Source: Mytilus edulis (taxonomy: Eukaryota). From it: a stretch of 64,000 bases of DNA. Position 1 is the first letter of the stretch, and each line of letters begins with the position of its first letter. The DNA is taken from positions 74,152,001-74,216,000 of the forward strand of contig NC_092354.1 in NCBI RefSeq assembly GCF_963676685.1. Reading direction: 5' to 3'. Of this stretch, positions 22,301-60,553 are shown one piece after another. The notes below the pieces were generated by a model. The model saw nothing but the letters and a program-made list of their open reading frames with translations, made no database searches and was not told where the DNA came from. The translations under genes and the position numbers were made by a program.

Positions 22301-22522
22301 TCATTTTCTTACTAACAACATGAACACATGTCCAAATATATGTGTATGTATAAATGTGACGCTCGCAATTTACGTGGAATTCAAGCGTTCATGTACAATT
22401 CAAGTGCAGTAAAACTAGTACCATTTAATTACAGTTGCAAAGAAAGATAACTTTTGTAAAATACTATAAAATGATGTATCATAAATTTAATAAACTGTTT
22501 TATTTTAATTTCAGAATTCTGC

Positions 22523-22629
22523 ATGCCAAATTTACTGACAGGTACAGTCATAAGACACAGTTTTACTGTGTTTAGACAACTAGTATCCAGGACAATGTCT
22601 ACACAGATTGGGAACCTGAAGTTTCTGGG
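22523..22629 (+). CDS. Candidate first coding exon encoding a mitochondrial-presequence-like N-terminus; tentative resemblance to the NAD(P)HX epimerase N-terminus
   Basis: tttcag acceptor ending at 22514, ATG at 22523, GG|gtaagt donor; MPNLLTGTVIRHSFTVFRQLVSRTMSTQIGNLKFL(G) is R/S/T-rich with no acidic residues and a second Met. Confidence 0.45.
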
Positions 22630-26132: not shown

Positions 26133-27303
26133 AATCAGATGTATTGATGAAATTCTATCGTATTCTTTATGGGAGGTAGAAAACTTTAAAATTGGTGGTT
26201 CAAGAGTCTACTATAAAAACTGGGCAAATGCGGGAATTTGGACAGTACAAGATTTGTTAGATGACCAGGGCAAAGTTATGTCATTTCAAAATTTCCAACA
26301 AATATATCAATTTAGGCCAAATATTTTACATTATTATGGAATAGCGCACTCGCTTAATGAGTGGTTAAACACGATTAATATTGAAGTAAAGGAGAAAAAA
26401 AATCATGCAATACTACCTTTTAACATAAGTATCTTTTTTGAATAAAAAAAAAGGTTCAAGGGAAATGTACAAAGTATTGAATGAAAAATATGTTACATTT
26501 GCTGCAAAGGAAAAATGGGAGAACCATCTTAATATGACTGGTATTAACTGGAAAAAAATACACACTTCGTGTACAAAATATAGTAAAAGCATTAAGCTTT
26601 GCTGGTTCCAATATAGAACTATCCATAGAATTTTGGGAACTAATTCACTACTTTACAAGATGAAAATAAATAGCAACAACATATGTACATTTTGTAAAGA
26701 AGGACCAGAGACCATAGAACATTTATTTTGTAGCTGTCCGATGGTTGCCAGTCTCTGGCATGCACTTAACATCTGGATTTTTGAAATGACAAATATTGAA
26801 CTGCCTTTGAATATTATGATTATTTTATTTGGTATCTACGAAAATGTTAAATTGAATTTTGTTAAAAATAAGATTATTCTACTTTCAAAATACTACATTT
26901 ACAGAACAAAACTACAAGAAGTTTTGCCAAATCTAAATGCTTTAAAAAAACTATTTAAAGGAACACTTGAACTTAGAAAAATACATTTCATTTAAAAACC
27001 TCTCTGTAGATGAATATAACAAATACTGGAGTCCCTGGCCCCTATCATAGAATAAATAATAAATGTTAAAATTTGATTGAAACACAACTTATGTATACAT
27101 GTATATTGCAAGAACACATAAGATTTCAATGTTATAAGATATTTATTTATTTTCAACCTATTATTGCACCATCATATATATTCAATTGTTGTTTTATTAT
27201 TTAATACTTCCTTTGTGTGAAAATGTCATTCTGTATACCTTTGTTCATACATGTTGTGCTAATTTATTTGTTACAATAAAGAACATTCATTATAAAAAAA
27301 AAA
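26133..27303 (+). mobile_element. 5'-truncated, frameshifted L1/Tx1-clade LINE (ORF2 C-terminus, 3'UTR, poly-A)
   Basis: ORFs 26254-26445 and 26438-26995 with FQYRTIHRILGTN and zinc-knuckle CTFCKEGPETIEHLFCSC; AATAAA at 27275; A tail; TSD aattaaggaatg / aattaagtaatg. Confidence 0.9.
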
Positions 27304-32000: not shown

Positions 32001-32512
32001 TCAATCGGAAATTTGTGTCCAAGATTCATTTTAGCAAAGTTTCGGGCTTATTTGATAAAAAGAGCCAATACACGATTTGCACGGGAGTCTTCTCCATTGG
32101 AAATAACACTACATGTACATTGTTTATGAAAAGTCGCATTATAAGCGCTCGCCAGATTATATCGCCTGTCCGTTGTTAATGGAATAGATGTTAACGATTT
32201 ATGTATTCAAAGTGTTTGACGAGTTCGTTTAGCTGCCAATTATCTGCTTTTACTGAAGTAATGCCCTTGGAAATATATAACTACAAATTGAAATGTATGC
32301 GACAACTCGCCTACATGTATGAAAGAATATTTATGGGAAAACAAATTGGTTAATGCCCCTGATCTCGACAGGGGACATTGGAACGCTGTTTTTTTAATTT
32401 TGTTATCATGAATGTCAGCTTTAATTTTTTTTTTATTGCTTTTTTTTTTTATCACTTATATTTATTCCATCAAATTGATAAACAAACATGATATACATGT
32501 AATCATTTACCA

Positions 32513-32947
32513 AAAGAGGGACGAAAGATACCAAAGGGACAGTCAAACTCATAAATCTAAAACAAACTGACAACGCCATGGCTAAAAATGAAAAAGACAA
32601 ACAGAAAAAACAATAGTACACATGACACAACATAGAAAACTAAAGAATAAATAACACGAACCCCACCAAAAACTAGGGGTGATCTCAGGTGCTCCGGAAG
32701 GGTAAGTAGATCCTGCTCCACAATATGGCACCCGTCGTGTTGCTTATGTGATTACAAATCCGGTACAATAGTCTAATTCGGTAGGTCACATTCATGAAAG
32801 GGAAGGGGATTGTAGTTACGACGTAAGGAACATATCCGATATCATTTGTGAAACGGTTATTCCATAACGGTCAACCAACTCGTGATTGCGTCCGTAAAAT
32901 TGACGAAGAGATGATTTCAACTTCACCATTTTGGAACTCTTGGTTTA
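32513..32947 (-). mobile_element. 5'-truncated retroelement (probably Penelope-like): C-terminal coding remnant plus 3' tail
   Basis: Minus strand reads MVKLKSSLRQFYGRNHELVDRYGITVSQMISDMFLTS*; flanked by the direct repeat tttaccaa; tail copies at 7407 and 45805. Confidence 0.7.
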
Positions 32948-33466: not shown

Positions 33467-34834
33467 AATATGATAAGTGGTATGCCATTATTTTGCATTT
33501 AATCTGTGCATATTAGACATGAATAATGTGAGTTGGTTTGGAATACTTTCTGGGTCCATGAACCGGATGTTTATTCGGCGATCTCGATCAATTTACAGAA
33601 TAGAAGAGTCGACTGGAAGTTCAGTAGAGACACCAGTAAAACATATCAGGTATTTAAAATTTACATGTGCTTCTTTATTTCATAACTGCTTCAGTGATAG
33701 CGTCCTTGCCTTTATTTCGAGCTCGGAGGTTTAAATCCGCGGCTGTTTCAAACCTAAATGTTTACGATATCTGGTAGATGCATCTTAGCTCATCGTGGAG
33801 TTTTTAGACGTCGGCCTGGCGTCCAAATGCTGTGTCTTAGATGGTTTACGTTTCCATGTGTACTGTTACCTTATGTGCTACAAGAGTAAACAAAGAGTTT
33901 AACCTCTGGGTCGGCTTTGAACAAAACTAGGTCTAAATCAGATATCATTAAAATGTTATGGTCGTGAATATACATGTGATAGTATCACACGAATCGAATT
34001 ATAAAATCACTTAACTCAAAAGCTGTAACTCGTCAATAAACAATTCATGTTTGAATTGCTAAGATGAAAATTTACTGACAGAGTACTCTGAATATAAACT
34101 TTTTTTTTTATAAATTCAGTAATTCAGATATAATGTTATAAATGATTTAAGCCAATTGGAATCCAGTTTTTATTATTTAGGTTTGGTTAACACGTGACGT
34201 CCTATTTTGAAATACTGTAGACTAAGTACGTTCATACAACAAGTTTAAAACTTGCATTGACCTCAATAAGGCTAACATTCTTTAATATGATATTGTCTAT
34301 AAGGTGTATAAAATGGAGCCTGTAATTCATTGGTCGTCGTCTGATACGGTCTGTCGTATTAGTTTTTAGTTTATCGTTTATTGTTTATCATGTATCAGCC
34401 CGCTCGACCTTTCAATTGTATCGTTTCACACTTTTTTCTTGCCTTGGTCTTTCATAGCTGACTCTACTGTTTGCCTTTGCTTATTGTTGAAGTTATACCG
34501 TGGCCTATGATTGATAACATCCACGTTATATCAAATCTGGTGGATTGATGTCTCTTGGTAATTACACCACATATCTTTTTATTTATTTACATGGTACAAA
34601 GTACTACAAATCATTATCTTGATCTAGTTTTGGTGCTCGCCGTTCCATGAGAAAATAACCCAAATAACTGGAAACCTTTTCTGACTTTCATCTCAAATAT
34701 TACTATCCATGACGATTCCTGTATGGTTTTACACTAGTCATTGTTGGGGGCCTTTACTATCTTGCTGTTCGGTGTGCGCCAAGGCTCCGTGCTGAAGACC
34801 GTACTTTGACCTTTAATGGTTTACGTTTACATGT

Positions 34835-35440: not shown

Positions 35441-36174
35441 ATGTAATGACTTGGATTGGGAGTTGTCTCATGAACACTCATACCACATCCTCTTATATCT
35501 ATAAGGATGAATTACGTGTTTTCACTCGCAATATTATTATTCCGTACATGCAATTCATGCAAAACGGAACATCACGTTAATCTAAAGTTTATTCATATGT
35601 TGCCTGTTAGTTGACATCTTGTTATATTTGTGAGAAACCTTGTTAACCATATTTGATTTGGACAAGTTACGGTTTTGTCATGTTTGTTTAAGCGCAGTTT
35701 ATTTTGTATACTCATGGGAAATAAATAATTACTTATAAATCTTTGTCATCAACAGGTTTTATCATCTCAAAGCATTCAGGCATGACGGCTTTTGTCACAA
35801 TTATACACAATGTCTTTTCTCATGAGACTATCGTTATACATTTTCATTTGCTGCTGTTTAAACATTCAGTTTAAATTAATAACGAAGTTTAAACTGTATT
35901 TTGCAATTTACTAAACACTCCTAGAAATATTGAGCAGAATAGTGTGAATTTATTTCTGCGTATTGATTTCTCAAAGTAAGTTGTGTACTTCGGGTAAGGA
36001 AGGATGAAGCGAGTGTTTGGTCGGAGTAAGAATTCATTGGATAAACCAAATTGTACCTTGAGATCGTCATCATTCTCAACGGACTGCTATATAAGGTATT
36101 GTTAAAATACATTTTTGTTTCGAAAAATTGCAGCTCAGATAATTACTAACGTGTCAGGACCAATTAAAATTATT

Positions 36175-40514: not shown

Positions 40515-40640
40515 ATGGATAGAATTTCTGTTAACCGATTTTCGTTCCGAAGGAAAGGAAGTAACAGGAAAAAAGATGAAGTATCCTCGAAACTTTATGA
40601 TTTTTCAAAGTTAACTTATTTAAGGTATGTTGAAATTTAG
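40515..40640 (+). CDS. Conserved small ORF or first exon, copy 1: MDRISVNRFSFRRKGSNRKKDEVSSKLYDFSKLTYLR(YVEI*)
   Basis: Gap-free homology to 51191 and 60440; in-frame TAG just upstream; A at -3 and G at +4; possible donor AG|gtatgt after 40624. Confidence 0.8.
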   Translation: MDRISVNRFSFRRKGSNRKKDEVSSKLYDFSKLTYLRYVEI

Positions 40641-43600
40641 TATATATTGCTATACCCCTATTTTTGACATTTTTACGTCTTATGTCTGTTTGTTTTTTTC
40701 ACGCATCGTTGTCAATATAATGGAATTTGATGCAACTGTCTTACAAGTGAGAGGTTTATATAGCTATACAACCGGGATCGATCAACGATTTTCTACAAAT
40801 AAAAATGCCTGTATCAAGTCAGTAATGACAGTTGTCATTCATTCTTGTGATGTGTTTGAGCTTTGGATTTTGCCTTTAGATTGGGGAATTTCCGTTTTGG
40901 ATTGTCCTCGGAGTTCAGTATTTTTGTGATTTTACATTTTGATTATTTCATAACCATAAACAAATCCAGAGCTTGATAACGTAGTATGTAGTTTGTTTTT
41001 GAAATAACAGTACCGAATGCATCGATGAAAAAATTCTTTTGTCGATTCAGTGTACAACAAACACTGATAATAATCAGCGTACGCATCTCAAAATGCAACA
41101 ATATAATAATTGTTATAGATACTGTAAGTTTTAGTTATAATGAACATAATTACAATGGTAACTAAACAAAATTAGAAATGACGATAATCACTGTACAATA
41201 TGTACGTAGATTACAAAAAATAACTATAATGTTTTTTTTTTTCAAATTGTTCATACTATTTGCAAATCTATGTCAGATATTTAAACATTTACCTCATGCC
41301 TAAACGCTTGATTGGATTTCGACAGCCTAATGATGTAAGTACAAGAAGTTATCGTAATACAATAGAAAACTTTCGAGTTCGATGCATTTCCGTCAAAAAC
41401 TCTGGTTTTAGTGAACGTCTTTTGTGCGTTTAGGGGCGTCGTCACTTCCATTCCAATGTTGAGCGAGTGGTTGGAAAACTATAATTCTATATTGTACGAA
41501 TTATTCGGCAAATTGAATTCTCAAAGTTGACAATCAGCATTGCTGTCATTAGGGAATTGCCATTAAGTACCTACAGAACAACCATTATTTCTAGTTTATC
41601 CTGCACAATGACGATCACTAAGACACTTGGTGAACGTAAATAGTGCAGGGATACAGGCGACCCCCTCTATCTGGTAAATGACGTCATAAAGGCGCGTATA
41701 ATTGACGAGTTTTTTTCGGTGACGGATGAACTCGAAAGTGGTCTATTATTATTTAGACTTGCACCATCGCTACGGTTTATTGTATGAGTTTCATTAATAT
41801 TATCATGTTCTTGTTCATAAAGGAATCGTGAATGTCGTCTGTCTATTCGATATTTCAACCTGGGATCGTTAGCATTTATCATTCTTAGATATGCCATAAA
41901 ACTATGTATGCGTATGGCTTATGTATCTTTCATGATGGATAACATTCAGAAATTATTCGACTACATGCAATTTGATATCAAATTTAGTGTTTGTCGATTA
42001 GTCGTCATTATTGTTTTAATTAGCCATGGTATTGTCATCTCGTTGTCAAATTTTAGTCTAAATAATTAGTTGGAATCTTCTACATTTCTATCAACCAGTG
42101 ACCAACCGCCGTAATTTACATATGGCGTTTATACACAAAATAAGTTTAAGTAATGAATTTTTCTTATTTAAAAAAAAAATACGTATATTAAATGGACGCA
42201 GACATTTGACTTCACTGATGCTTTTAGCACGTTACAGTCAAACAAATGACTATATAGTAATTGTACAAAGACAAAATGGCTTCGCTTTCAAACATATTTT
42301 ATTCATTAGAATATGATAAGGATTTACGCCACAGGCACACAGTGGTCTTTTGGAATTTTTTAAGATGTTCAACGGTCGACAGAAAAAAAATCGTCACCAA
42401 AGTGCTTCAACAATTACATTTCGATATATTAACTTTTGACCAAGACCAATCGTAAAATTAGTTTTGGGTTTAATTCATTTTGAAACACAATGTGATTGTT
42501 GTCTTCCTATCAAAATGCCATTTTAACTATGTATTTGCATTTCGGTGAAGATATATTTAAATTATAAGTTAATTTATATATATTTGGACCAGTTGTAACC
42601 TTTACCAAACAAGAAAAGAGGTTTAGAACAGTTTTCTTAACATCTATTCTATGACAAAATAGTTTTAGACAGTTTTACCCAATAGCACTTTTGATCTGAT
42701 TCTTACAGTTCTATTATATACAAGTATATACCACAGTTCTATTATATACATGTATATACCAAGTTTGAACTAATTCTAAAAGTTCTACCATAGAATAGAT
42801 AAAAGTGTAGTGTAGGACAGATCTATATATTCATACATGTATAATGTATTTCATTAAATGATTACTTTATTCATTTATATTCTTCCTCTCGTTTTACTCG
42901 AATCGTTCTTTACTGTTTATGTTATTAACATATTTAAGAAAAAAGTGAAATAACAAAAATACCACACTCCGAGGAAAATTCAAAACGGAAATTCCACAAT
43001 CAAATGTCGAAACAAAAGCTCAATCACATCAAACGAATAAATTATAAATGTTCTACCTCAAGATACATTCTGACAGTTGTGCTATACAGTTTCATAATGT
43101 ATAGATTTTGGAAGTGATATTCTTAAACTGTACATACCAGTTCTACTTACATTTGTTCATGTAGAAATGTTTTTGTACAGTTCTTTTCTAAACCAGTGCG
43201 GACAGTTTGACTCATGTTTAGAATCGTTATATGACGTGAAAGCTTATTTCGGATGTTTAAATGAGGGATTATAACTGATCCAAACTGTACTTCTTGGATT
43301 AAAAGCAAATAGAAATTAATTGTTTCAGCACTTTAATATTATATTTAGCAAGGTCAGTGACCTTAACCATGTTAAGTATTATGCTACTGTGTTTTTAAAT
43401 TAGTTGTTTTTATACCGTTTATGCATGTTGCTAATTTTAGTTGATAACTTTCTATAACACAAAATCATTAGATTATAATGGCCATTCCATTTTAAAATGA
43501 ATTATTGAATTGAGACTTAGGCAATTCAAAGCTTTTATGACTTAAGAAATCCGTATGCCATCATAATTGTTTGTACACGTTTCCTGAGAAAGCTATATTA

Positions 43601-45804
43601 ATTCTCTACATGATAACATTAGAAATTGGATCTCCCATGACTATAAATATATCAGTAATGTTTTTCTTTTAAAATAATGAACAGGTATTTAATTTAACAG
43701 CTGGTTTTACGTTTGGTGTCAATCTATACCAATTAAGTGTTTTGTTTAAAAAAAAAAACAGCTCCTACGTTTATAATGTGTTTGGTTCTATATATAGTCA
43801 ACGTCTATACATATGTATATCTAGAACGTGCTTGATTGGCACTGGTGCTAAAAGTACAAAACTAAACTACGTTACAACAATCTTTTAAATTAAGAAGAAA
43901 AATCAATGTGCTAATTAAGATTGATTGACTTTGCTTTGCCTTTTTTTCTCAATTTTATTTCTTATAATATATACGTTATTAACATTGGGGACCCAAACAA
44001 GCAAAAAGAAAAACTTGTTATCGTGATATAAGCAAAGATAAGACGGATATATGTATAACTGACATCAATGCTCCAAATTGATGGCCACTTTTTGAAGACA
44101 AATTTTAACTGTTCAATGTTTTTCTGTTATTTTTACACAATTTCAATATGTTCTTTTTTGTTATATTAACATTAATAAAATTGAGAATGGAAATGGGGAA
44201 TGTGTCAAAGAGACAACAACCCGACCAAATAAAAAACAGCAACAGCAGAGGGTCACCAACAGGTCTTTAATGTAGCGAGAAATTCCCGCACCCGGAGTCG
44301 TCTATTAATCTATTAAGATAATACTCGTGTTACTAGTAATTTGATGTTAAGACGTCGGTTCCACAGCATTGATATTTTATTACGTGTAACTTACGTATTT
44401 AACGTCAATATCAACGTTATACACGATTACGTTGAACTTATTATGTTTTAGCAATGTGTTACATGCGTTGCATTTATTCCATTTGGAAAATGTTTGGTTT
44501 TGAGATTAATCTTCAAATCATATTTCATTGACTTTCATTGAAACGACATACCCAAAATAGAATTTTAATATTAACGAAACAAATAAAAGATTTGTCAAAT
44601 GGAATTTCCTATACCATCAGAATGATTATTTATCTATGAAGCTGTAATAATACTTATGGGAAATCGTCATTAATTTGATCAGCTTTTAGTATAGATATAT
44701 CAAGTAAATGTGTTTTTATCCTTTCAATCTTGAATACATTTTTTAGTTGATAAGTCGGTGAATAATGTGTGTGCCATTATATCTTTGCTATGCCGTTACC
44801 ACAAACGATGTGTATGGAAATGTCACAGATCCTGGCATTAATTCAGTGTGTTTGATTAGAATTTCTAAGAAAGCGGAAAATATTTAAAGTCATCACTAAG
44901 CAAATCACACATTTAAATCATTTTGGAAGTTTTAATTAGTATTGATTTATCTTTGGCATGTGTTCTCCGCGATGATGTTATTGATGCATGGTTCTATTTG
45001 TGTTGTATTATGTTTAAATTGTCAATAGAACTTTGAATTTCAGTTGAACGGATGATACCATAACTTCATTTATGTAATGCTGGTGATGTTTGATGACTGT
45101 TTAACACATAGTGGTAAATTATATACATGTTCAGGATAAGAAATTATTGATGCGATATGAATATGAACCTAACTTTGTACTAGTCCGACATACTGAGCCG
45201 GGTTTTTGCAGACTACTTAATTATGATATTGTCTAAACAGATATTCGGACCCCAGACCTTGTTATCCGAATCTCAATGTGCATCTGTGTTTCGAAATTGC
45301 ATTGCATGATTACTACGCATCAATTGAAAACTTGCAAACTTGAGACAACACAAACCCAGCAAAAATTCGTAATGATTTCAGTTGCTTCAAATGGTAAGCA
45401 GATACCTCACTGTATTGCTTGGGAATGCCATTATGCAATAATCGGAAACAACGATCTAATTGTTAAATGTAAAAATTTTGTAAACAAAAGATTTAAATTA
45501 GACATCTAATCAATTATGTAAAATCTAAAAAGCTTTTTTGGATATAAATCTTATCTTGGATAAAATATCTAGAAATAAAATGTGTTTATCGAGATCGAGA
45601 TCAAAGTTCATTAAATGCAGCCGGTAGCATCAATTAAAAAAGTGTATTTAATACAATTCAGAGTATTGATTCATATATACATCAAATGTGCTTTGTTTGG
45701 TATGAATTTATCAATTTGTCCCATAATGTATGTTTCGGAATAAAACACATATATGCAATGTTTTTATGCAGTTAAGCTGCATTATGCGAGCACAGAATAT
45801 TTGA

Positions 45805-46062
45805 TTAGACTATTAACAGGATTTGTTATCACATAAGCAACACGACGGGTGTCACATAGAGCAGGATCTGCTTACCCTTCCGGAGCACCTGAGATCGCCC
45901 CTAGTTTTTTTGTGGGGTTCGTGTTGTTTATTCTTTAGTTTTCTATGTGGTGTCATGTGTGCTGTTGTTTGTTTGTCTTTTTCATTTTTAGCCATGGCGT
46001 TGTCAGTTTGTTTTAGATTTTTTTAGAGTTTGACTGTCTCTTTGGTATCTGTCGTCCCTATT
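45805..46062 (+). mobile_element. 3' tail copy of the retroelement family at 32513-32947
   Basis: gcaggatctgcttacccttccggagcacctgagatc...gccatggcgttgtcagtttg is the near reverse complement of 32515-32780. Confidence 0.8.
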
Positions 46063-46904
46063 TTGTGTTCTACCCAATAAATGGTGAAATACGTGCCATT
46101 GTTATTATCTAGTTGGCTACTATGTTATTTATAACTAATTGAACACTTTTTTCATACTTTTAATCCTGGTTTACAAAAAAAATATGACCAGAAAAACCTT
46201 AAATGATCGTCGAATCACCCAAAAGGAAGTAGTACTCATTAGAATCCTTATATAGTTTATTATCGCCGAAAATCTCTAAAGAAAGTAGTTTCCCAATTGT
46301 AAAAGTCGTAGGAATTTTGTTTGTTGTCAATACGTAGAACAACTACGTCAGTAGTCTTTAAATAAGTAAAACTAGTACTGTTGGCGGCAATTTCAAAGTA
46401 GGAGACGACATTTTCGTATGTTTTAAATTTGGAAGATTCTGATGATAGAAAGGTAATTACTGTTAATCATGATTTATTTTTCTTTAAGATGAGTGTAAAT
46501 GAAAAGTGTATTCCCATTTGAATTTCATTCTTTTAAATTACTCCTTTTTTCACATAAATAAGCTTATCAAGTAATGCATTAACATAAGGTGTTTACACTT
46601 TCTTAAAAATGAAAAAAACTCCGGATCAAATCGACCAAGTAGACCTTAATGGAATGTTTTAATGCATGGGAACAACTCGTCCCCGAGACAAATTGGATCG
46701 TCTGAGAAGACAATATAGACTTTTGTCAGATTTCTTAGGGTTTCATAGAATGTTAGAATAACGTGTCTAGCGGAGCCATAAATCTTTCGTTTGTGCATTT
46801 GGGCCCATTTGGGGGTATTTCAAGGGGCCTAAAGAAGGAAGTATTTACTGTAGAACCCATTTTTTCAAATTTTTGAAATGAGTATTATTATAAAAAACAG
46901 TAAG

Positions 46905-48186
46905 TGATAGACACATATGGTCTTCAGTAATGGGACAATATAACATATCAAAGAAAAAAGGGGGAGTCCCTGGAGACAACCCTACCCCCTTCCCAATGTT
47001 TGGGAACAGTCGAGATTCCCACCCGTAAACCATATTTATTCATGTATGGGACAATATAACTAATCAAATGAAATATAGTGGGAGTTCCTGGGGTCACCCC
47101 ACCTCCTGTTTGGGAACTCTAAAATGGTTGAGATCCCTACCCCTTAACCATATATATTCAAGTATTGGACAATATAATAAATCAAATCAAATATAGGGGA
47201 AGTCCCTGTAGTCACCCCCTCCTGTCTGAGAACTTAGAAACGGGCGAGATCCCAACCCTAAACCATATATATTCATGTATGGGGCATTATAGCTAATCAA
47301 ATGAAATATAGGGCAGTCCCTTAGGTCACCCACCTCCTCCTGGTGGGAACGTTTAAACGGTCAAGATCCTCACCCCTCACCATATATATTCAAGTATGGG
47401 ATAATATAAAAAACCAAATGAAAAATAGGGTGTGTCCCTGGATACAACCCTACCCCCTTCCCAATGTTTGGGAACTTGGAACAGTCGAGATTCCCACCCG
47501 TAAACCATATTTTTGAGATCCCAACCCTAAACCATATATATTCATGTATGGGGCATTATAGCTAATCAAATGAAATATAGGGCAGTCCCTTAGGTCACCC
47601 ACCTCCTCCTGGTGGGAACGTTTAAACGGTCAAGATCCTCACCCCTCACCATATATATTCAAGTATGGGACAATATAAAAAACCAAATGAAATATAGGGT
47701 GTGTCCCTGGAGTCGCCCCACACCTTCACGTTTGAGAACTTTGAAATTGTTGCGATCCCAACCCCTAAACTATACATACTCATGTATTTTACTATATAAC
47801 AAATCAAATAAAATAAAGGGGGAGTCCCTGTTGTCACCCTACCCCGTCCTGTTTGATAACTTGGAAAAGAATGGGATCCCCATCCCACACCTAAACTTTA
47901 TTTATATTCATGTATGGGACAATATAATAAATCAAATGAAATATAAAGGGGAGTTCCTTGGGTCACCCCACCCCCTCATATTTGAGAACTTAGAAACGGT
48001 CGAGATTCCAACACCTAAACAATATTTATTCATGTATGGGACAATATAACTAATCAAATGAAATATAGGGGGAGTCCCTGTGGTCACCCTACCCCCTCCT
48101 GTTCGAGAACTTAAAAACCTTCGAGATCCCCCCACCCTAAACATGCTAAACCATATATATACATGTTTGGGACAATATAACAAATC
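46905..48186. repeat. Satellite-like tandem array, unit about 120 bp, 10-11 copies
   Basis: Recurring attcatgtatgggacaatataa...caaatgaaatataggggagtccctg...gagatccc...taaaccatat. Confidence 0.9.
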
Positions 48187-49905
48187 ATTTACATTTACTA
48201 TAGGTAGGTCAGTCAGACCTCACTTCTGATCCCTGTAGTCTTGTCTGGTTTGTGCATCATAACCATAATAACTTTTGTACTATAGAAGTCAAACTCAGTT
48301 TTCTTTCCAGGGAAACAAGTCCATTCATACTATTACAAGTTCGTACTAAGTCAATTAGTACTACTAACAGTCAACTAATACCAACGTTTACTACAAACTA
48401 GAACAATTGCAATCATCGCAAACTTGTACCACTGCAGACTCACCATTAAAATATACATTGATATATGCATTGCTCTTGAAAACCTTGATAACAAGTGAAT
48501 TATTTGCCTTAATAATTAATTCATTTGATAAATAAATGTACAATATATGAATGTTTAATGTTGAAGCAACATTGCCACAGTTTTCATAATTACGTTCGCC
48601 TTGGTTTTTAATTAACTGCCTTCAGCGCTTACAGCGCTTTGATTTATTAGTATTCAAATAACATTGCATATAAGAAAATAACCATCATATGAAGTCAACT
48701 CATCAAATTTCATCTTCGCTTTTAACCCGTGTATAAGCTTGTGTAACTTTGTAACCTCAAGTTTCCAAATTTTTGTATAGAAACACAAAGTAATATAAGG
48801 AGTATAAACCATCTCATTATTTGGTTTAGTATTGTCAAACAATCGCGACCCCCCACCCCCCGTCCTTTACAGACGACCAAAGTTACCTTATGAAAATACA
48901 CGGTGTTGAGCACTAAATCATCCCTACCATGTACTCAGACTGGTGGTAACAACGTAAAACAAATAGTGTAACGATGTAATACACAAAATACCGACATTAA
49001 AGTAGTTGGGGTTTCTTAAAGCTAGTTCAAAGCAATTATCTGCTAATAAATAAATGTTCTCTGTGAATTTGATATCCCTTTAATGTCAACATTATACAGT
49101 ATTCTTATAGATACCTTAATTATTTAATGGCCTCTTTTATAATTCTTTGCTATTTTGTTTTAGCTTTTAGCAGATGAACTTTGTTCTTCAATTATTCCAT
49201 GTTTCGAAGTATTCTGTGTTGCTTGTAAATGGATTATTTATTTATTTGTAGTACATTTCGTTACTGATTTCTTAAAGGTTAATTACCTTCTTACAGAGAA
49301 TAGAATGTTCACTGATACTAATGGAATAGGCAAAGGCATCGATACGACACACTAATCACCAGCATTTAAAAACCTGCACGATTGTAGTAAAGTACGGAAC
49401 AAATAGATTATAATGATTTTTAGAAATGCAGCAATGCAAATATGCCCTTTAGCATTGATTTAAAGTGTGTAGCCTGTCATTGATATAAGATATAGTAATA
49501 ACGTATATGGATTACTTGCCATGTTAATCTGACCGTTAGACAGCAACAACCCGACCGCGACCGTAATTCGTGGATCAGTAGTTAAGGTTGTAGTTGCGTG
49601 ATTTGTAGTAGGTCAAATGTATGTGTTGTATGAGTTAATGTTAACATGTACATGTCAGCCTAGAAAGTGTTGACTGACCTTACGCTCATAATGTTTATCA
49701 TTTGTCTATATGAACACGTTTTTTTGGGTTTTTGCCTGATTCTCAAATCAATAGGTCAACTATATTTGGTGAAAGGAATGATTTAAAGGTGTATATATCT
49801 GTACTGCAGGTACCGTCTGTCGTTGACCTCATTTCCTCTGTAATGATGAGGTTTTGTGAAGACGAAACACATAGAAAAAACTGATTATGGTATCTATGAT
49901 GCATT

Positions 49906-50417
49906 TATTATACCCCCGCTTTGAAAAAAAGGGGGGTATACTGTTTTACCTCTGTCTGTCCTTTCGTCAGTCCGTCAGTTCATCAGTCCGTCAGTCCGTC
50001 AGTCTGTCAGTCAGTCCGTCTGTCCCATGAATATTGTTTGTCACATTTTTCTCAGGAACTACACTACCAGTATTTCTGAAATTTGGTTTATGGCTTAATA
50101 TAAGTCAGCTTTACCGTGTGATGCGTTTTCAGATTCATCACTCAACAACTGCCTGTTTACCGAATACTTGTTTGATTTTACACATGATAGCCAAGTTGAA
50201 AATGTTTCGTCACATTTTTCTCAGGAACTACAATACAAGGATTTCTGAAATTTGGTTTAATGGTTAATATAAGTCAGCTATACCGTGTTATGCGTTTTCA
50301 GATTCGTCACTCGACAACTTCCTGTTTCCTAAACACTTGCATATTTTTACACACTTAATATTATCCACTTGCGGCGGGGGTATCATCAGTGAGCAGTAGC
50401 TGGCAGTTTCACTTGTT
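49906..50417 (+). mobile_element. HINE/DINE-1-like (Helentron-associated) non-autonomous element
   Basis: Subterminal IR atacccccgc (49910) / gcgggggtat (50374); short 5' hairpin; (gtcc/gtca)n tract; two internal repeats of about 170 bp; ends cttgtt. Confidence 0.75.
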
Positions 50418-51190
50418 GTGTCCTCTTTTATAACAATAGAGGTATGGACGAACTACATTTCACGTATAGACTCATTGCAAGGTATACCAATCTATATGTC
50501 TGTCAGGTTTCATCTGATCTTAACCTATTTTTATGGTTCACTGTTTCATGTTATGTTTTTTTCTGGTTAAATCTGTTTCTCAGACACAAAAGAATCGTTT
50601 GTCAGTTATGAAAATGAATTTAATAATCATTGAAAATTATCGAATTCGTGTGACACATGAGTTGGAAATTGTTAGCATCTTCTTCAAACTTCACAAAGCT
50701 ATTCATTGTTTCAAGTTAAATGATGCGTCGTCGTAAAATATCGATATTTCATCAATTATTTTTTTTCTAATGAGATATTAACAATAGACAGCTATGAGCA
50801 TCAACACAAAAACATAATGTTACATACTTAAGGTTTTTTTTTGTTGTAAAAATAGAAGTGCGTTTTTGATCAAATTACTACTGAAATGGACTTTTAATGA
50901 CGGTTATAAGATTTAACAAGTTTAAGTTTGTGACAGGTTTTTACGCTTGGAGTTTTGCATGTAAACGCATAATCAGGTTGAATTAAGATAATCTTAAAAT
51001 AACAGAAATCGCTGTTCAGTCGAAACCTAATTGATAGATGGAACTTCCAAGAAACATCAAGCAATGGTGAGCGAAAAATGACAAGCTGACTTACGACTTG
51101 TGCATTGCATTCATACTAAAATTACATCGGAAGTCTATATCTATACAAATAAAAAAGATTAAATTTAAGTCAAATTTTAAAGCCTAAAAT

Positions 51191-51304
51191 ATGGAAAGGA
51201 TATCTGTAAATAGATTTTCATTCCGAAGAAAAGGAAGTAGTAAACGAAAAAATGACAACAAAGGTGGAGATTATGATTTTAGTCAGATGACCTTTTTCAG
51301 GTAA
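51191..51304 (+). CDS. Conserved small ORF or first exon, copy 2: MERISVNRFSFRRKGSSKRKNDNKGGDYDFSQMTFFR*
   Basis: 37 codons then TAA (also readable as donor AG|gtaaat); in-frame TAA upstream; 7 synonymous vs 1 nonsynonymous differences from copy 1 in the first 16 codons. Confidence 0.85.
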   Translation: MERISVNRFSFRRKGSSKRKNDNKGGDYDFSQMTFFR

Positions 51305-52832
51305 ATCATATATTTATTATGAATTATTAAGTGTCGTGTCGTCAGCCTTAATTGTAGAGAAACATCTAACATTAATAACAAATGGCCAAAATTGTTCTGT
51401 AAATGCACAGAAGCATATCTTGAAATTCCGAAAAGAATATTAAAAACATTACTAGAACTTAATGTCGGTACATTTTTATGGTTATATTACAGATATTGAA
51501 ATAACTTTATTTGCCTGGTTGTTTATACCTGAATGTGTTTGTCCTTTTTTATCTACGGGAAATAATTTAGCCCTTGTAAAACAAAGTAAATTTCTGCATT
51601 TCAAAAATGTATTTATTGTCAATACAAACCTTTAAACCCCCATTAATTTTAATTTGGACCAATACTGTTGTGTTCATATGATCGACAATATTAATTACTT
51701 TATATGACAGAAACACAGATTTTTTTTCAATTCTAGTGCAGAATAGAGCGTTGTCTGGTCCTTGAAACTGCAGCGTTGACACATGTTGTATATAAGTTTT
51801 GCATTTTTGTTTCGAATATTTTGCTTCAAGAGTTCTTAATGAAGTTAAATCAAGTTAAAACGCGTCATTTGCTTACTAATAATAGTTGTCAAAAGTACCA
51901 GGCTTGTAATCCTGAAAAAGAAGAGACCAACACGAGTTGTAAGATTGTTTAATTAACTGCAAGTTCAATGTGAAGAACGATAAATCAGGCGAACTAGGAC
52001 ATATACCGTACTAGAACCACAAAATCCCCCAAAACTCGTGAAAACTGTTACTTCGTCGGAAATGTGGTTGATGTTCCTGTGTCATCAACATTTACTGACA
52101 GCTTTTATATTTGATATGTGGGTTCCATGCGTATATCTGCCTTAATTTTTATTATACCTTATAATCGCCGCCAATTTTAAATTAATTATTGCAGACAGTG
52201 AATTTGGTTAAATAATAACGTTCAGTCAAATTAATAATAACATATATTAGTGTACATCAGTAAGATGACAAAAGAGGTCCTGTTTGATGACTTGGGTTTC
52301 CCAATTTAGAGAAGGATTTGTCCCGCGCAGTCCCTGATTACAAAGTTGATGTAACAATAGAAAGATGTGACATGTAATTCATTGCGGAGATGTCAAATGC
52401 CAATCACAACGCAATTTCCAAACCCAATTAATCATATCTACTGAAAACTAATTGGACAACGGCTGTATTGGTATTTCGTATATTCAAAAAGTGCAGAATT
52501 GTGTTTTCCTAAAATTTGCATTACAAATATTTGCATTTTCCTGTACAGTATTTAGTTGTGCAGCTTTACTTATAAATACAACACATATAAGTTAACATTG
52601 TTGGGTTATGATTGGATAAAATGTCGCCTTAAAATATATTTGCTGGACTAATTACAAACTGGATAGAATAACCCCTGCAAACTAAAGAATAATTGATAAT
52701 GTCATGCAGTTCATATCATATACATGTACATATTGGCATACCTTATTGTTTTATCTATTTTGACGGCATGCATATCATATAGAGAATATGTCAGCTAAAC
52801 AAACCCTGAAACCTATGTTTAGCTTTGAATTG

Positions 52833-53073
52833 ATGCACTGATACAATTTCTCCTCTTACCATGTACACTGATACAATTCTCATCTTACCATGTACACTGA
52901 TACAATTTCTCCTCTTACCAAGTACACTGTTACAATTTCTCCTCTTATCATGTACACTGAGACAATTTCTCCTCTTACCAAGTACACTGTTACAATTTCT
53001 CCTCTTATCATGTACACTGAAGCAATTTCTCCTCTTACCGTGTACACTGATACAATTTCTCCTCTTACCATGT
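52833..53073. repeat. 30-bp minisatellite, 8 copies
   Basis: Unit tgtacactgatacaatttctcctcttacca. Confidence 0.92.
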
Positions 53074-54998
53074 AAAACAATACGGAACTTTCATGACTTT
53101 AGCAGCTTATTTCCTCAGTTTACTTTATGAATATACGTTTTTTCAATGAAACAACTTTTGATTGATTCTGGTTTTTAAAGACACCATAAATACATATTGT
53201 GTTGGATAAGACATTACATGCGATACAATGTAGGAAATATTCTATGAAATTTCAATTCAATATAAGTAAATATTGCATAATTGATGTATACGTCAATGAA
53301 AAATGCAACAAAACAAAAATATATACAGAGATCGACACGGTTTTCAACATTGGCTATACGACTTATTGTTAATCATAACTCACGCCACTAGCAATAAATA
53401 AAGTCAAAACACTATCAAGAATAGTAACAGTTAGAACCATAACATATTCGCCAGGGAAGTTCGTAATCAAATATATCTGCACAGACAACAACTTGTTATG
53501 ATTGTCTGCCGATGTAACTTTATGATATTAAGGCAATAGAAATGGAAAGTGTTAATGTATTGGGTTGTATGGATTATATAACTTCATATTTGTTATGCAT
53601 TTAATGCTTGTGCATTGGCAATCTATCTTGATATGGAGACACCAATATACAATTTAATTGATGTTTTGCATGTGATGTTAAATTATCATCATATTAGGTT
53701 GATTTTGTTCTTTAATGTACAGTACTCTGATTGATATTGAAATGAAGCAACCAATGCATATCTCAATATTTCACTTCAATATTAGACGTTTGTCTTTTTC
53801 AAACTTATTTATAATGGCATCCATTAACTCTGGATCATATGCAATTTATCCTAAGGGTAATTTTATGAAAATTATGTTAATGATAACCTGAATGAATAAA
53901 ACAACCGAATAATTTCTTGCCTGACGCACACACTATGTGTATAGCCAAGTTAAAAACGTCATAGTATATTTTATTCATTCGCCTGTGTTTGTAGCAATGT
54001 ATCGTATAAAACTACCATAATATCTCAAAATGTTACGACTGAGTGTTGGTTGTTTGGAAACATTTTGGAAATCCAAGGGAAAATTGTATCGGGATTACAA
54101 GGTAAGCAAAAATTGGATTTCAAAATGATTCGTTATTTAGTCATTTATATCTCCGGACAACAATTACAAACGAAGCCTTTGATCGGAAACGCAATTAGAC
54201 AAAGACGCATTGCACTTATCCGGTCTGCCAATGATAAAGCATCGAACAAACATGAACACATACATCGTTTTAGTGTAATATTAAACTTAATTGATCACAC
54301 CATGTATTTAAAAGTTGAACGAATCTGAAAAACCAATCAAATGACCAATGTTATATTAAGGCATTGACTACTGAGGAAAATCCAATCATCAGGAAACACA
54401 AAAGTGGATTTGTATACATAACTTCAACGTGTCTCTCCTAGTATGAGTATTGTGCTATATCCTAATTCAATACAAGACCATATTTTGTGATACATCTCCG
54501 ACGTTTTCATACACCAGTTTTACTTTTGTTTTATTTTTCGAATAAAAGTTTATCTTAAAAAGCACATCGAACTGAACAAATGCAAAACAATTAAGTTGGT
54601 ATCTGCCCTCTTTAAACTACATTAAATATATTTATATTCGTACTTGCATTTACACCAGTACTTAATCATTGCTAATACGTTGTATGTCTTAGAAATAATG
54701 TGTATGTTGACAGTATTATTAACACTTTGATGATTGCTGCTTTATTTTAGAGCGTTAAATACTATTTACCCGATAACAATTCGAGCGGAAACTATGAAAC
54801 AAATTCCTTGGATAGACAAAGTGCCTTGCCGAAAGTCGCTAAAGGATTTCCTGTAAACAACATGTAGTGCGCTAAATCATCTCACATGTCTAGCAATTTA
54901 CTTAGGTTCATGTTTCTTTGTTATCAACAAAATGTGTCTTGTATATATTTCTGTAGGACTATTATTGAAATTAGCCCGTTGCTACTGTGCAGCCTAAT

Positions 54999-55123
54999 CA
55001 GGGGCGAATTCCTGCCATTTTAAAAGGGGGTTTCCAACTACATGTCCCCATTCAAATGCATTGATCGAAAGAAAAAAAAGGGGGTTCCTACCCCTAGAAC
55101 ATCCCCCCTTGGACCCGCGCCTG
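54999..55123. mobile_element. GC-rich MITE with a 5-bp TSD
   Basis: caggggcgaattcc / ggacccgcgcctg; TSD ctaat/ctaat. Confidence 0.7.
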
Positions 55124-57399
55124 CTAATGCGTACACTCGCAATTTAGTCTTATATTGAAGATCATAATACCATGCATTTGTCATTCCGATTTAATTTGAT
55201 TGAACAATATCATATTTAGGGGGCGCAATCTTCGGTTTACCGAACCACAACTAATGAAACCCGTGTTATTTCATGAGTATGGAATTTATAAGTGAGGGAC
55301 CTTCTAACAAATCAACACAAAAACAAACCTCTCACCTGAAATCCGGCTTATTTTGTCAAATAGTGTTATTCGGAAACGTACATAAAACCATTAATGTCTG
55401 GTGTCTACATTTGTGTAACGGCGGATGCGTAAATTTTATGTCATATTCATGCTATTGGTAAAGTTCAAAACACATAATCAATGTTTCTGTTTTATTTTTG
55501 TAGACTTATTATGTCGCAAGTATGCCACAACTTGAACGTATTTGCTTTATAATGGATATTACTGTGTCGAGTTGTTTTGATTAGGTTACCCTTATTTGCT
55601 ACAATATATATTTATCAAAGGGGTTATTACGTGCACAAATTATTTGAAGAACAAACTAAAAGACAAATGCATTTCAGTTAATTTGACAAAATACAGTTAA
55701 TTGATCTAACAATAAGGAAAACATATACAGTGATATGATTACTAACATTAATATTGATAAAAAAAATCCTCCAGTTTTTATTGGTTAAGTTCGTAACTAT
55801 TGTAAGATTCGTAAATGTGTCAATTGGCAAACGTAACATACATAGCAGAACAAGAACATGTTAATTGTATATGAGTATATCTTTCATTTACACCGCTATA
55901 CTGATTTTGTTATCATGGTAATGCTAAATAGTTTACACCTATAGTTGTTAATGTCTTTGTCATTTTGGTCTCTTGTGGACAGTTGTCTCATTGGCAATCA
56001 TACCACATCTTCTGTTTTATATTACACGATACCACATCATTGGGAGCCATATCAACCTTACCAAACACATGTTTTACTCCTAACCGACTAAGTGATGCCC
56101 GTATCCCTTAATGATATTTTTATACGCAAGAAACACAATAAATAAGTTATCAGATTCACCAAACGCGCAACCCACGGTAGTTTAGTAATAAAAAAAGCCT
56201 TATTTGATTGTGTTGAGAAATATTTGCTGATGCTCTAATTAATTTGACATAGATTAAAGTTGTGACAGATTAAACATATGGCTTTTTCTAACGAACTGGA
56301 CATTGGTGATAAATTATCGTTTTATGTTTGTGGTTATTTCAAAATGACAAATGTTATTAGAAGGTACATGTTCCATGTGGTCAATATAAAAAATCATAAA
56401 TCGTCGAAGTACCCTTTAAGAAAACTAGGTAGGATTAAAAGTAAGCATTGACCTTTAAATAGTATTTAGAAATTTGGACTTAATACATATAAAACTATGG
56501 TGCAAGAACCGTCCTGTCTTTCTACTTCCAATTAAACGGCGGCAATCAACTGTCGGATTATTCTGCCACTGTAACATATGGCCGATGATAAATTATATAT
56601 ATTGAGTTCAACAAACACTTTATTGGAGAAATTGTAAATGCCATTAAATAGAATTAGTACATATACATGATATATGTCATAGACCATTTTATGCTATGAA
56701 AAAGCTGTAGTTTAAAATGCTCTCATAATAGCATTGTTAGAAAAGTACCAATCTTATATATGGATATAGAGATCCTGTTTGATGATCGTTTGTTTTTACA
56801 TTGAAACTTGTCATTATATTTGAATATAGAGACCCTATTTGATGATTAATGGTTTGTTTTTTACAGTGAAAACAGCCTCGCGTTTTCCAAGTTTCAAATT
56901 GATGTCACAATCGAATGTTGTAACATGCAATTAATTATTGAGTTGTCAAATGTCAAATACAACAATGTTAGTTCCAATCCCAATTAATGTTATCTATTGG
57001 TAACTAATAGAACGTCGAATGTATTTGAATTAAGTATAATCAAAAGTGCAGTAGTGTGGTTGCTTTCAATTTGTTTTCAAACTGTTTTCATTTTCCTCGG
57101 CGATTTAGGGCTTTTCTAAGATAACCAATTTATTTGTACATATCTAATTTCTGATTGGATTGCATCTACTAGTAATTGAAGTAATGGATTATTTACCCAC
57201 CTGATTAGATTTTACATTAAAAAGTAATTACTGTGTAATTATGTTGTACACTTCAAATGATCTTTTGTGTAATTTGAAATTGATATTCAATGATTTTAAA
57301 GAAATACATTATAATAAGCATTACATTTGTCTCAGCTTTTTTAACATTGTAACATGGTATTTACGTGATTTAATTGGTGTACTTCTACATGTTCTTGCA

Positions 57400-57835
57400 C
57401 TATACCAGGTCGAACAAAAATTCGTACATACAAAACACGCCAGCAGAAACGAAAGACAATCATTACAAACACGCTGACGGATGTACACGTACCGAGCCAA
57501 GTCAAACGGACATCACAGAAAACAATCCAAACAGCAACAGCAATATTAATAATAGAAAAAAGATAAATAAAAGAACAATTTAACACGTTGCTAAGATGAT
57601 AAACAACGTCAATACGCAGAATGTATACATCAAAACCATCATGTATTTTTTGTGAAGTTGAAACGGAATATTTTTTCAACAAGGTCTTGGTACCTTCCGA
57701 TGAACTTTTTTTTGGAAAAAAAGGACGATACCTTCTTTGACATACCTTTGGTTCTACAACTTTTTGCTCCGACACTCATGACACCATTGCCGTTTTACAA
57801 AGTCTGAGTAGGAGCTGCAAGCTCTTGGAGTGTGC
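57400..57835 (-). mobile_element. Degenerate retroelement 3' fragment (Penelope-like RT C-terminal region)
   Basis: Minus-strand pieces RACSSYSDFVKR and KKFIGRYQDLVEKYSVSTSQKIHDGF (across frameshifts), related to the 32.9-kb and 61.8-kb remnants. Confidence 0.6.
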
Positions 57836-58659
57836 CGGCATAAGTTTTCCTCTGCCTCGCAATCAAACTATTGTCCTTGTTAATGTTGCGGCCATGTTTA
57901 AAAGAGTCTCTGTAAATAATGTTCAACATCCGAAAACAAACTTACAAACACCTTTAACTCACAAATGTGTTTTAGTTATTTCAAATTCATTAACAGTTGA
58001 ATAATTGCAACATTATCACGTTTTGTAAAACATTTAAAGGTAAAAAGACATTTCAAAATGGTCAAATATTTTTTGAATATTAACTTTTGAGGTTGAACAA
58101 ACGTTTTTAGCAATAAAACAAAAATAACAAAAAAGTTCAATAGTAACTGCTTTAGACATGAAATATCAATTATATGTTTAATTGAAGCATTCTGGTTTTT
58201 TCACCATCATGGGTTGCACAATGTTATGATCATTTTGGATTTTGACAACAATGTGTTACTACTATTCAATTCAACTTTGTATTCGACTTGGATTTCAAAC
58301 TTATATTATCATAAAACTATAGATGAATCTAGACAAAACGCGTATCTGGCGTCTAACAATGACATATTTGATGATTTTGAACAATCGAAGGTGAATGTAA
58401 AAAATCATAAAAAATGCACTACCATCATTGTTTAAAGTATAACAAAAAGCAATGGCTCCATATGTATTGATTACAAAGAAGGAAGTGTTGAATTATGGAC
58501 GTAATGTAGAAAGAAACTTGAATGCGCAAATCACTATTTATATTCACATCTTACAAAAAAATAAACACTTTAAAGTCAGTACATGTTTAATTTCTAGACC
58601 ACCAACGGAGTTTAATCAGACTTCTTACTCTACATATAAATTCTATTGAGAGAGTGAGA

Positions 58660-58759
58660 NNNNNNNNNNNNNNNNNNNNNNNNNNNNNNNNNNNNNNNNN
58701 NNNNNNNNNNNNNNNNNNNNNNNNNNNNNNNNNNNNNNNNNNNNNNNNNNNNNNNNNNN
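58660..58759. other. Assembly gap (100 N)
   Basis: Run of N. Confidence 1.
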
Positions 58760-59200
58760 AAGCGAGCCCGCTATGGCGACCTGATATTCGAGCTGATGAA
58801 GTCAGTATAAAAAAAAAAAAAAAGCGATCATTCTGTTTATCGACAATCTGTCTTGACTCTTTGTTTTTTTGTAAAGAATATGGATTAAAATGAATTAATT
58901 AGTAAAACTACTTTTACGCGTACAACACTTTGGGTTTCGTTGTTCGGTTGTACATTTGTATGACAGGAGTCGCGTGCATCTCATTGATACATAACCTATG
59001 TATATTTATTTTAAACCTCATACTATATAACAATAACTCATTATACACTGCACTTAGCGCCTTAATAAACCAATTATTTTGTTTTTCTGTTTTTTGTTGA
59101 TTACTGGTGTTAACGTATTTTCTTCAAGCTACTTCAGAATAGTTCGACAATAAGTAAATGAAATTGAGAATGGAAATGTCCATTTTTAAAAATATACTTA

Positions 59201-59960
59201 TTCGACTTAGTCTTTACCTTTAAGCAAGTTTGTGATTTCTGTTATCACGATAATCTATTTAAGAATAAATTCATAAAATTGCAGTGAATGCTCTCACTAA
59301 ATTCACTTTGGAACTATAGTTTTTCTTCAAACAAGTTCAGAATACTTTTCGAAAATTAGTAAATGTTTATTGTAAAAATCTTGTTCGACTAAGTCTTTAC
59401 CTTTGAGCAAGTTCGTGATTTCTGTTATCACGATTATCTTTTACAGAATAAATTCATTCATAAAATTGCAGTAAATGCTCTCACTAAATCCACTCTAGAA
59501 CTGACGTCAGTGTTCAGCCCTTGTATGACAATATAAAATAAACAATCATTTTAATCGGAAGTTAATACTGATAATTGTATGGGACGAACGTCAAGAGAAG
59601 CCAGTTCCTGTGGCGTTACAACTTATACTGTAATAACCAATACACGATTCATCGTATTCATCGTATTGTATTAGCAGAGACCAATATCCAGGAGAATTGT
59701 TTATATCAGCTGAACCGATCAACTTCTACAAAGTTTCATTTTTTGAATCAAATATATAACAGTTCTTATCTCTAAGATATTTAGATGTTTCGATCGCAAG
59801 GTGGATAAGTATTGGACATACATTAACATAGACCATATCCAGGAGAATCGTTAACATCAGCTGAACCAATCAACTTCTACAAAGTTTCATTATTTTGAAT
59901 CAGATATATAAAAGTTCTTATCTCTAAGATTTTAGTTGTTTCGATCGTAAGGTGGATATG
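59201..59960. repeat. Two adjacent local duplications (periods of about 182 bp and 150 bp)
   Basis: ttcgact..gtctttacctt..agcaagtt.gtgatttctgttatcacga occurs twice; atccaggagaat...cagctgaacc.atcaacttctacaaagtttcat occurs twice. Confidence 0.8.
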
Positions 59961-60439
59961 AATTGAGCTGTGTAATTAGTACTTTGAAATAATAGAAATT
60001 CGATTATATTTATCTTGTGTATGAACTTGTTAATCGGTTTGGATTTATATATTTAGATGTGATAAAAAAGTAATACATTAGCGTTATGGTGACGTACATA
60101 GTGGACGGTTTATTTGTGTATATATTCCGCATTTTAGATTCAACTGGACGTATTTAGATGCACATGTCATGACAGTATGACAATCGAATAATACTTCTGT
60201 TAGATTAAGCATCGAGGATTGTTCCAATGTATAATTAATTAACAAGTGTGCAGACAAGTTGCAAAAAAAAACCTCCTTATTATATAAAACATTATTATTA
60301 TTGGTAAAGTTTGATAGCAATACAAATATAAATTTTTTATGTGTTCATCGATATCTAAAAGAGAAACACTATTGACTTATTAAACTTGATCATACTGTAT
60401 TACAAGTGTTTTGTCTATGGACGTTTGACACAACAAAGA

Positions 60440-60553
60440 ATGGAAAGGATAACAGTAAACCGTTTCTCTTTCCGACGAAAGGGTAGCCATAAGAAAAAGG
60501 ATGAAGCCAAGGAAAACGCTTTTGATTTCAGTAAGATGACTCACTTGAGGTAG
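60440..60553 (+). CDS. Conserved small ORF or first exon, copy 3: MERITVNRFSFRRKGSHKKKDEAKENAFDFSKMTHLR*
   Basis: 37 codons then TAG (also readable as donor AG|gtagga); A at -3 and G at +4; TATATAAAA about 160 nt upstream. Confidence 0.85.
   Translation: MERITVNRFSFRRKGSHKKKDEAKENAFDFSKMTHLR

Follow-up and report, generated by a model that had tools for sequence, protein, structure and literature searches.

A described parallel to the locus analysed here comes from the mammalian enzymes of NAD(P)HX repair. For the dehydratase NAXD three forms are described: one exon 1 encodes a mitochondrial propeptide, an alternative one encodes a signal peptide, and an alternative start gives a cytosolic form (PMC9804276, citing Marbaix et al. 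2014). We have analysed 64,000 nucleotides from the mussel Mytilus edulis (assembly GCF_963676685.1, contig NC_092354.1, positions 74,152,001 to 74,216,000 of the forward strand; this whole stretch is called the window below). A sequence-only reading of it had noticed three conserved 37-codon open reading frames (ORFs) on the same strand and had taken them for a candidate undescribed family of microproteins or, as a bracketed alternative, for an array of alternative first exons. Our analysis comes down with high confidence on the side of the second idea: the three units are very probably alternative first coding exons, used in mutual exclusion, of the mussel NAXE gene. This single-copy gene encodes the epimerase of the repair system, and its common exons lie beyond the end of the window. 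Variable-first-exon loci are otherwise known from UGT1A and the clustered protocadherins, and the mussel array can be compared with both kinds of system.

The three units and the NAXE exons downstream

The three 37-codon stretches lie on the forward strand at 40515-40625 (unit 1), 51191-51301 (unit 2) and 60440-60550 (unit 3). Their translations, MDRISVNRFSFRRKGSNRKKDEVSSKLYDFSKLTYLR, MERISVNRFSFRRKGSSKRKNDNKGGDYDFSQMTFFR and MERITVNRFSFRRKGSHKKKDEAKENAFDFSKMTHLR, respectively, align without gaps, just as the sequence-only reading had described, and 20 of the 37 columns are invariant. Pairwise nucleotide identity is 65-68%, with third codon positions holding most of the differences. Over all 37 codons the synonymous divergence (pS) is 0.62-0.95, so that synonymous sites are saturated, and the nonsynonymous divergence (pN) is 0.21-0.28; over codons 1-16 the values are 0.68-1.1 for pS and 0.03-0.05 for pN. 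A 16-residue peptide has been kept almost identical in three copies past synonymous saturation, and the earlier view of old duplicates under purifying selection at the protein level is borne out. The 60 nucleotides flanking the units on either side are 18-42% identical, which is the background level, and the flanks are unrelated, as had been said from the start. The remarks on the start sites also hold: all three ATGs have A at -3 and G at +4, and an in-frame stop lies two codons 5' of the ATG in units 1 and 2 (28 codons 5' in unit 3). A six-frame search of the whole genome (1.37 Gb) returned exactly three loci (E values of 7.7e-17, 6.7e-10 and 7.2e-7), which are units 1-3; this rules out a chance match as well as a high-copy element. 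Finally, it should be noted that the assembly has a gap of 100 N at 58660-58759 (no strand), in intron sequence 7.4 kb past unit 2 and 1.7 kb ahead of unit 3. This gap is outside every unit and exon and leaves uncertain only the spacing of units 2 and 3.

We examined 120 kb past the end of the window for coding frames; coordinates above 64000 continue the window numbering, with their equivalents in L004, L005 or L006 given in brackets. A YjeF_N gene on the forward strand begins its common exons about 9 kb downstream of unit 3. Exon 2 lies at 69392-69500 (L004:5392-5500) and carries the common acceptor, starting ttttcag/T CAG GAA GAA.. (a slash marks an exon border); exon 3 lies at 71086-71196 (L004:7086-7196), exon 4 at 82939-83200 (L005:8939-9200) and exon 5, the last of these NAXE exons, at 84690-84919 (L006:690-919). 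Exons 3 and 4 match the Pfam family YjeF_N (PF03853) with 37.2 and 41.8 bits, respectively, against a cut-off (gathering score) of 24.9. Exon 3 contains the motif GPGNNGGDG, and all 87 residues of exon 4 align with the mouse structure 2dg2 of AIBP (apolipoprotein A-I-binding protein; E of 1.7e-30). Exon 4 is found at a single place in the whole genome. Judged by these matches, the gene is a single-copy NAXE gene (NAD(P)HX epimerase, that is AIBP, of the YjeF_N family).

The ends of the units fit this gene. The sequence-only reading had the peptides of units 2 and 3 stop directly behind Arg37, and that of unit 1 four residues later; the stops are present as described, but as ends of a protein they did not stand, for the apparent stops behind Arg37 (GTAA/GTAG) overlap the GT donor consensus. 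The 3' ends read AAG/gtatgt in unit 1, CAG/gtaaat in unit 2 and GAG/gtagga in unit 3, and in each the Arg37 codon is split past its second base, which makes a phase-2 donor. As probable alternative first coding exons on the forward strand, the units would then consist of 36 codons plus AG, at 40515-40624, 51191-51300 and 60440-60549. The AG of a unit and the T of exon 2 make a Ser codon, and the junction reads ..T[YFH][LF]-S-QEEAQQIDEELF.., in parallel with ..VKYLSQEEAQAVDQELF.. of mouse AIBP. By eye, a candidate AG acceptor was found just 5' of the ATG in units 1 and 2; joined to the phase-2 end of the first exon E1m (see below), it would lead to a stop within about ten codons. Both units have their own ATG, and in-frame read-in from an upstream exon is blocked.

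The units belong to a larger set. At least seven first coding exons are found within about 44 kb, each with its own ATG and all in phase 2 before GT: every one of the seven donors leaves two codon bases ahead of the GT, and exon 2 supplies one base past ttttcag. The four members other than the units, also on the forward strand, are E1m at 22523-22629 (MPNLLTGTVIRHSFTVFRQLVSRTMSTQIGNLKFL plus GG of a split codon; donor GG/gtaagt), E1a at 33558-33649 (MNRMFIRRSRS..; MNRMFIRRSRSIYRIEESTGSSVETPVKHI plus AG; donor AG/gtattt), E1b at 36004-36095 (MKRVFGRSKNS..; MKRVFGRSKNSLDKPNCTLRSSSFSTDCYI plus AG; donor AG/gtattg) and, past the end of the window, E1f at 66868-66980 (L004:2868-2980; MDISKFYLKALSVRRKYT..). 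The peptide of E1m looks like a mitochondrial presequence, since it is basic and hydroxylated and has no acidic residue ahead of its second Met at position 25. E1a, E1b and E1f align loosely to the units around [NK]R.[FS].RR..S, which suggests diverged members of the same exon family, with a similarity too weak for proof; E1a has the look of a shorter, diverged relative of the units. Three tandem paralogous genes behind the units were also considered and rejected: blastn and tblastn between the inter-unit regions gave nothing beyond dispersed repeats and no repeated downstream exons. Because such paralogous exons are missing between them, the units are best taken as separate first exons. An array of seven first exons on the gene of a small enzyme is unusual.

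Deposited isoforms, mussel RNA and competing explanations

A profile of the three unit peptides was run against 1.84 billion representative proteins and gave 33 matches. Nearly all of these are short ORFs in which the peptide is followed, past the Arg codon, by sequence that is not conserved, as would be expected of read-through into an intron. Full-length proteins were reached by a tuned profile search and cluster look-up, and the spliced model was compared with deposited proteins exon by exon (piecewise substring match). In the NAD(P)H-hydrate epimerase-like isoform X2 of the oyster Crassostrea gigas (P0003), a unit-type peptide runs on into NAXE exon 2, and residues 26-70 of AIBP align with this protein; isoform X2 of Saccostrea (P0034) shows the same unit-to-exon 2 junction. 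In Mytilus, P0274 (CAG2233438.1 / VDH91527.1) consists exactly of unit 3, as its residues 1-36, and exons 2-5, and P0276 (XP_071140860.1, M. edulis) matches E1m, as its residues 1-35, and exons 2-5 piece by piece. The M. galloprovincialis isoforms account for further members of the array: unit 1 is 97% identical to the N-terminus of isoform X4 (P0169, 273 aa), unit 2 is identical to that of X5 (P0283) and unit 3 to residues 1-36 of X3 (P0287). E1a is 90% identical to the N-terminus of X1 (P0278), E1b is identical to that of X7 (P0289), and X2 starts with E1f. Moreover, unit 3 is modelled in M. trossulus and M. coruscus. The alternative N-termini are thus already present in the public annotation of sister species. 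The annotated Mytilus NAD(P)H-hydrate epimerase-like isoforms (M. galloprovincialis XP_076081890-97, M. trossulus XP_063437531-35, M. californianus XP_052084846-50) represent the same gene as the locus described here: exons 2-5 and the alternative N-termini agree, and there is no difference of substance.

We compared four sets of M. edulis RNA data at exon 2, namely three transcriptome assemblies from three studies and the raw RNA-seq run X24, whose depth on exon 2 is about 0.3. Spliced contigs from all three studies run from E1m to exon 2, on to exon 3 through a GT..AG joint, and then to exon 4; the letters 5' of exon 2 in the three assemblies map to 22599-22628, within E1m, which is the only first exon in the RNA contigs examined. 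Several points have to be set against the use of the units as first exons of NAXE. In the three M. edulis assemblies and the shallow run X24, neither reads nor contigs connect any of the units to exon 2, and the unit/exon 2 junctions in Mytilus and oysters are known from deposited protein models. The one RefSeq entry found for M. edulis (XP_071140860.1) has the E1m start and bears no isoform label. Exclusive use, separate promoters and a function of the tail are, in addition, features that we infer. The missing junctions in the assemblies are weak evidence against the use of the units, because minor isoforms tend to be lost from contigs, and run X24 is too shallow to count against it. In the RefSeq record of M. 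edulis, the six first exons other than E1m may lack annotation.

Some details of the RNA data deserve mention in their own right. One transcript contig (run X6, contig record 15) reaches 1,972 nt 5' of exon 2, of which the coding part of E1m takes up 107 nt; this extension could be a long 5' untranslated region, an upstream non-coding exon or an assembly chimera. An AG acceptor lies just ahead of E1m at about 22514-22515. Near exon 2, two intron stretches, one just 3' of it at 69596-69810 (L004:5596-5810) and one at L004:4619-4660, have a summed transcriptome-contig depth of 166-497, compared with about 30-50 on the NAXE exons. Many small contigs with loose ends account for this depth, and an element of these stretches also matches 45804-46065 and 32511-32777 in the window; it looks like an abundantly transcribed dispersed repeat.

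How do other explanations of the units fare against this evidence? That they are free-standing small genes, encoding basic microproteins of 37-41 residues that end at the TAA or TAG behind Arg37, would agree with the good start context and nearby stop of each unit, with the conservation at the protein level and with the many such short stand-alone ORFs that gene callers report on genomic contigs. We nevertheless consider this highly improbable, since the stops lie inside consensus donors and their position is not conserved, unit 1 reading four codons further, and since the homologues are full-length NAXE proteins of 264-304 aa, with identical peptides heading annotated isoforms of 273 aa. The C-terminal motif of the peptide, being the first element of the YjeF_N fold, would be left without its partner in a free peptide, and the short database matches run past the Arg into non-conserved sequence, as intron read-through would. 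The candidate new microprotein family is removed, because its peptides form the N-terminal ends of an enzyme of housekeeping metabolite repair, annotated as isoforms of NAD(P)H-hydrate epimerase in Mytilus, oysters and many other invertebrates; a match to the N-terminus of a characterised protein is what the sequence-only reading itself had named as refuting the family. It is the bracketed alternative of the sequence-only reading, an array of alternative first exons, that gains from the match in phase and from the deposited isoforms.

A related possibility is that one ancestral alternative first exon was duplicated and that the units are what is left of it, at most one being still in use and the rest being silent pseudo-exons. 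The E1m junction alone is seen in the three transcriptome assemblies, and three near-identical N-termini look redundant. But the ATG, the open frame, the donor GT and phase 2 are kept in all three units despite saturated synonymous sites, which would not be expected of a silent exon, and a separate RefSeq isoform of M. galloprovincialis (X3, X4 or X5) corresponds to each unit, with unit 3 recurring in the two other species named above; we would be surprised if this explanation were right. Pieces of a transposable element or dispersed repeat carrying an ORF might come to mind as the surrounding introns are rich in repeats. To this idea we give no credence at all, as the units have three copies in 1.37 Gb, all at this one locus, and their similarity ends exactly at the exon borders.

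Alternative first coding exons of NAXE are thus the explanation that we adopt, and the following mechanism can be proposed. Each of the seven first exons would start at its own ATG and splice in phase 2 to the common exon 2, followed by exons 3-5. E1m gives a 272-aa protein with a leader resembling a mitochondrial presequence and an internal Met, so that the full-length product could be the mitochondrial form and a start at Met25 could yield a cytosolic form, in parallel with the mammalian repair enzymes. Each unit would give a 273-aa isoform that lacks the leader and begins with a disordered basic tail of about 27 residues, containing the invariant M[DE]RI[ST]VNRFSFRRKGS. Each first exon would be under its own promoter and used exclusively, and the array would diversify where and when extramitochondrial NAXE is made. 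The diversity probably lies in regulation or expression and not in the protein, because three near-identical copies survive past synonymous saturation.

The RFSFRR-type tail

The full-length homologues with a unit-type N-terminus are NAXE proteins, and the tail is widespread among them. RFSFRRKGS or a close variant heads the NAXE of bivalves (Pinctada, Ostrea, Mya and Ruditapes), gastropods (Haliotis, Pomacea, Biomphalaria, Bradybaena and Arion), the cephalopod Octopus, the brachiopod Lingula and the nemerteans Tubulanus and Lineus. RFSFRRR or RFSFKRR heads that of chelicerates (scorpion, ticks, spiders and horseshoe crab), of the hemichordate Ptychodera and of the sea stars Acanthaster and Asterias. 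In several species, including oysters, Mya and Mytilus, a presequence-type isoform is present beside the tail type. From this distribution, the RFSF[RK]R[RK] tail appears to be an old alternative N-terminus of NAXE, present in protostomes and ambulacrarian deuterostomes. Pfam holds no family for the three unit peptides, their profile matched nothing in the PDB up to an E of 10, and a literature search found no paper on the RFSFRR tail motif or on alternative first exons of NAXE. The conservation of the RFSFRR-type tail across several animal phyla is a small lead, apparently undescribed.

In the clam Ruditapes philippinarum, five or more distinct NAD(P)H-hydrate epimerase-like proteins were observed, encoded on different contigs (P0175, P0179, P0185, P0194 and P0231), all with a unit-type N-terminus and a diverged core. 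There the unit-type form seems to have expanded via whole-gene duplication and not via first exons.

An AlphaFold2 model of the unit-3 isoform, built from a 41-sequence alignment, has a predicted TM-score (pTM) of 0.80. The mean predicted local distance difference test score (pLDDT) is 46-48 for residues 1-20 and exceeds 90 from about residue 31; residues 38-50 form a helix. According to this model, residues 1-27 of a unit are a free, disordered, basic tail, and the last nine or so, ..DFS.[LM]T.[LF], belong to the catalytic fold. The unit motif [YF]DFS..T[YFH][LF] aligns with ..AAVKYLSQEEA.. of mouse AIBP. The second aromatic motif, for which the sequence-only reading had suggested a docking role, owes its conservation to being the first structured segment of the YjeF_N enzyme, and the docking interpretation falls away.

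As to the first motif, the tail could act as a phosphorylation-controlled module for localization or interaction, with candidate sites of PKC or PKA type at Ser10 (RFSFRR) and Ser16 (RRKGS); RRKGS would be a basophilic-kinase site by its motif, as had been proposed earlier. The tail presumably belongs to the same class of motif as the basic-aromatic effector domain of MARCKS and the optimal PKC substrate motifs. Like the MARCKS effector domain, it is a short basic-aromatic stretch in a disordered region, with a Ser between Phe and Arg/Lys (RFSF followed by basic residues); the likeness is one of motif class alone, and Pfam and the PDB give no homology to the tail. We may wonder at this stage whether the tail is a switch by which phosphorylation controls targeting to the membrane, to calmodulin or to the nucleus. 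The epimerase, or a second function like that of AIBP, would in this way be sent outside mitochondria, and in mussels the tail would have been amplified to an array of six copies with diversified promoters; we put this forward tentatively, as a possibility more doubtful than probable. Since NAXE deficiency leads to severe human disease and compartment-specific isoforms matter for the partner NAXD (PMC9804276), an invertebrate isoform whose non-mitochondrial tail is regulated, if true, could show where NAD(P)HX repair is needed.

Surrounding sequence and comparison with known systems

Several other features were seen around the NAXE locus. Upstream of it, on the forward strand, a 286-codon stop-free frame at 10209-11066 is rich in Ser/Thr/Asn repeats (..HGTSSFTKSNSRSSHGTSGFTNSNSRS..) and may represent low-complexity sequence or a large exon that belongs to a neighbouring gene. 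Adjacent open frames at 26134-26992, also on the forward strand, resemble the tail of a retrotransposon ORF2, the translation having been read by eye. NAXE intron 3 holds a minisatellite of about 1.1 kb at 72200-73320 (L004:8200-9320), in which several frames are open on both strands and the units include TIQQINEVINF and YTTDQRSNQLY. On the reverse strand, clusters of long open frames of up to 391 codons occur at 74060-76560 and 149290-153850, one of the clusters being inside NAXE intron 3; one frame has a zinc-knuckle-like CFYCNQPGHFARNC, and the clusters look like retroelement genes. Downstream of NAXE, on the forward strand, two mutually similar groups of exon-like frames at 99939-101040 and 121851-122839 (..YGIYNYASNEMY.. 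/ ..GNCTAQSIDGTGFDAKF.., ..RGVDCDVYITQRTDW..) may be tandem paralogues of a secreted protein.

Set beside the mammalian NAD(P)HX repair enzymes, the mussel NAXE locus belongs to the same repair system and shares the use of alternative 5' exons or start codons to vary the N-terminus on one catalytic core; the leader of E1m and its internal Met follow the mammalian logic of a dual mitochondrial and cytosolic form. The array differs from mammalian NAXD in that it is carried by the epimerase and not the dehydratase, with seven first exons instead of two, and in that six of the mussel exons encode variants of the basic RFSFRR-type tail, which is neither a presequence nor a signal peptide. To our knowledge, no mammalian counterpart of this NAXE tail has been described. 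With UGT1A and the clustered protocadherins, the locus shares tandem related first exons, presumably each with its own promoter, and common downstream exons. The variable exon of those loci is a large functional domain that diversifies specificity, whereas in the mussel it amounts to 30-37 codons, and three of the mussel exons encode an almost identical peptide.

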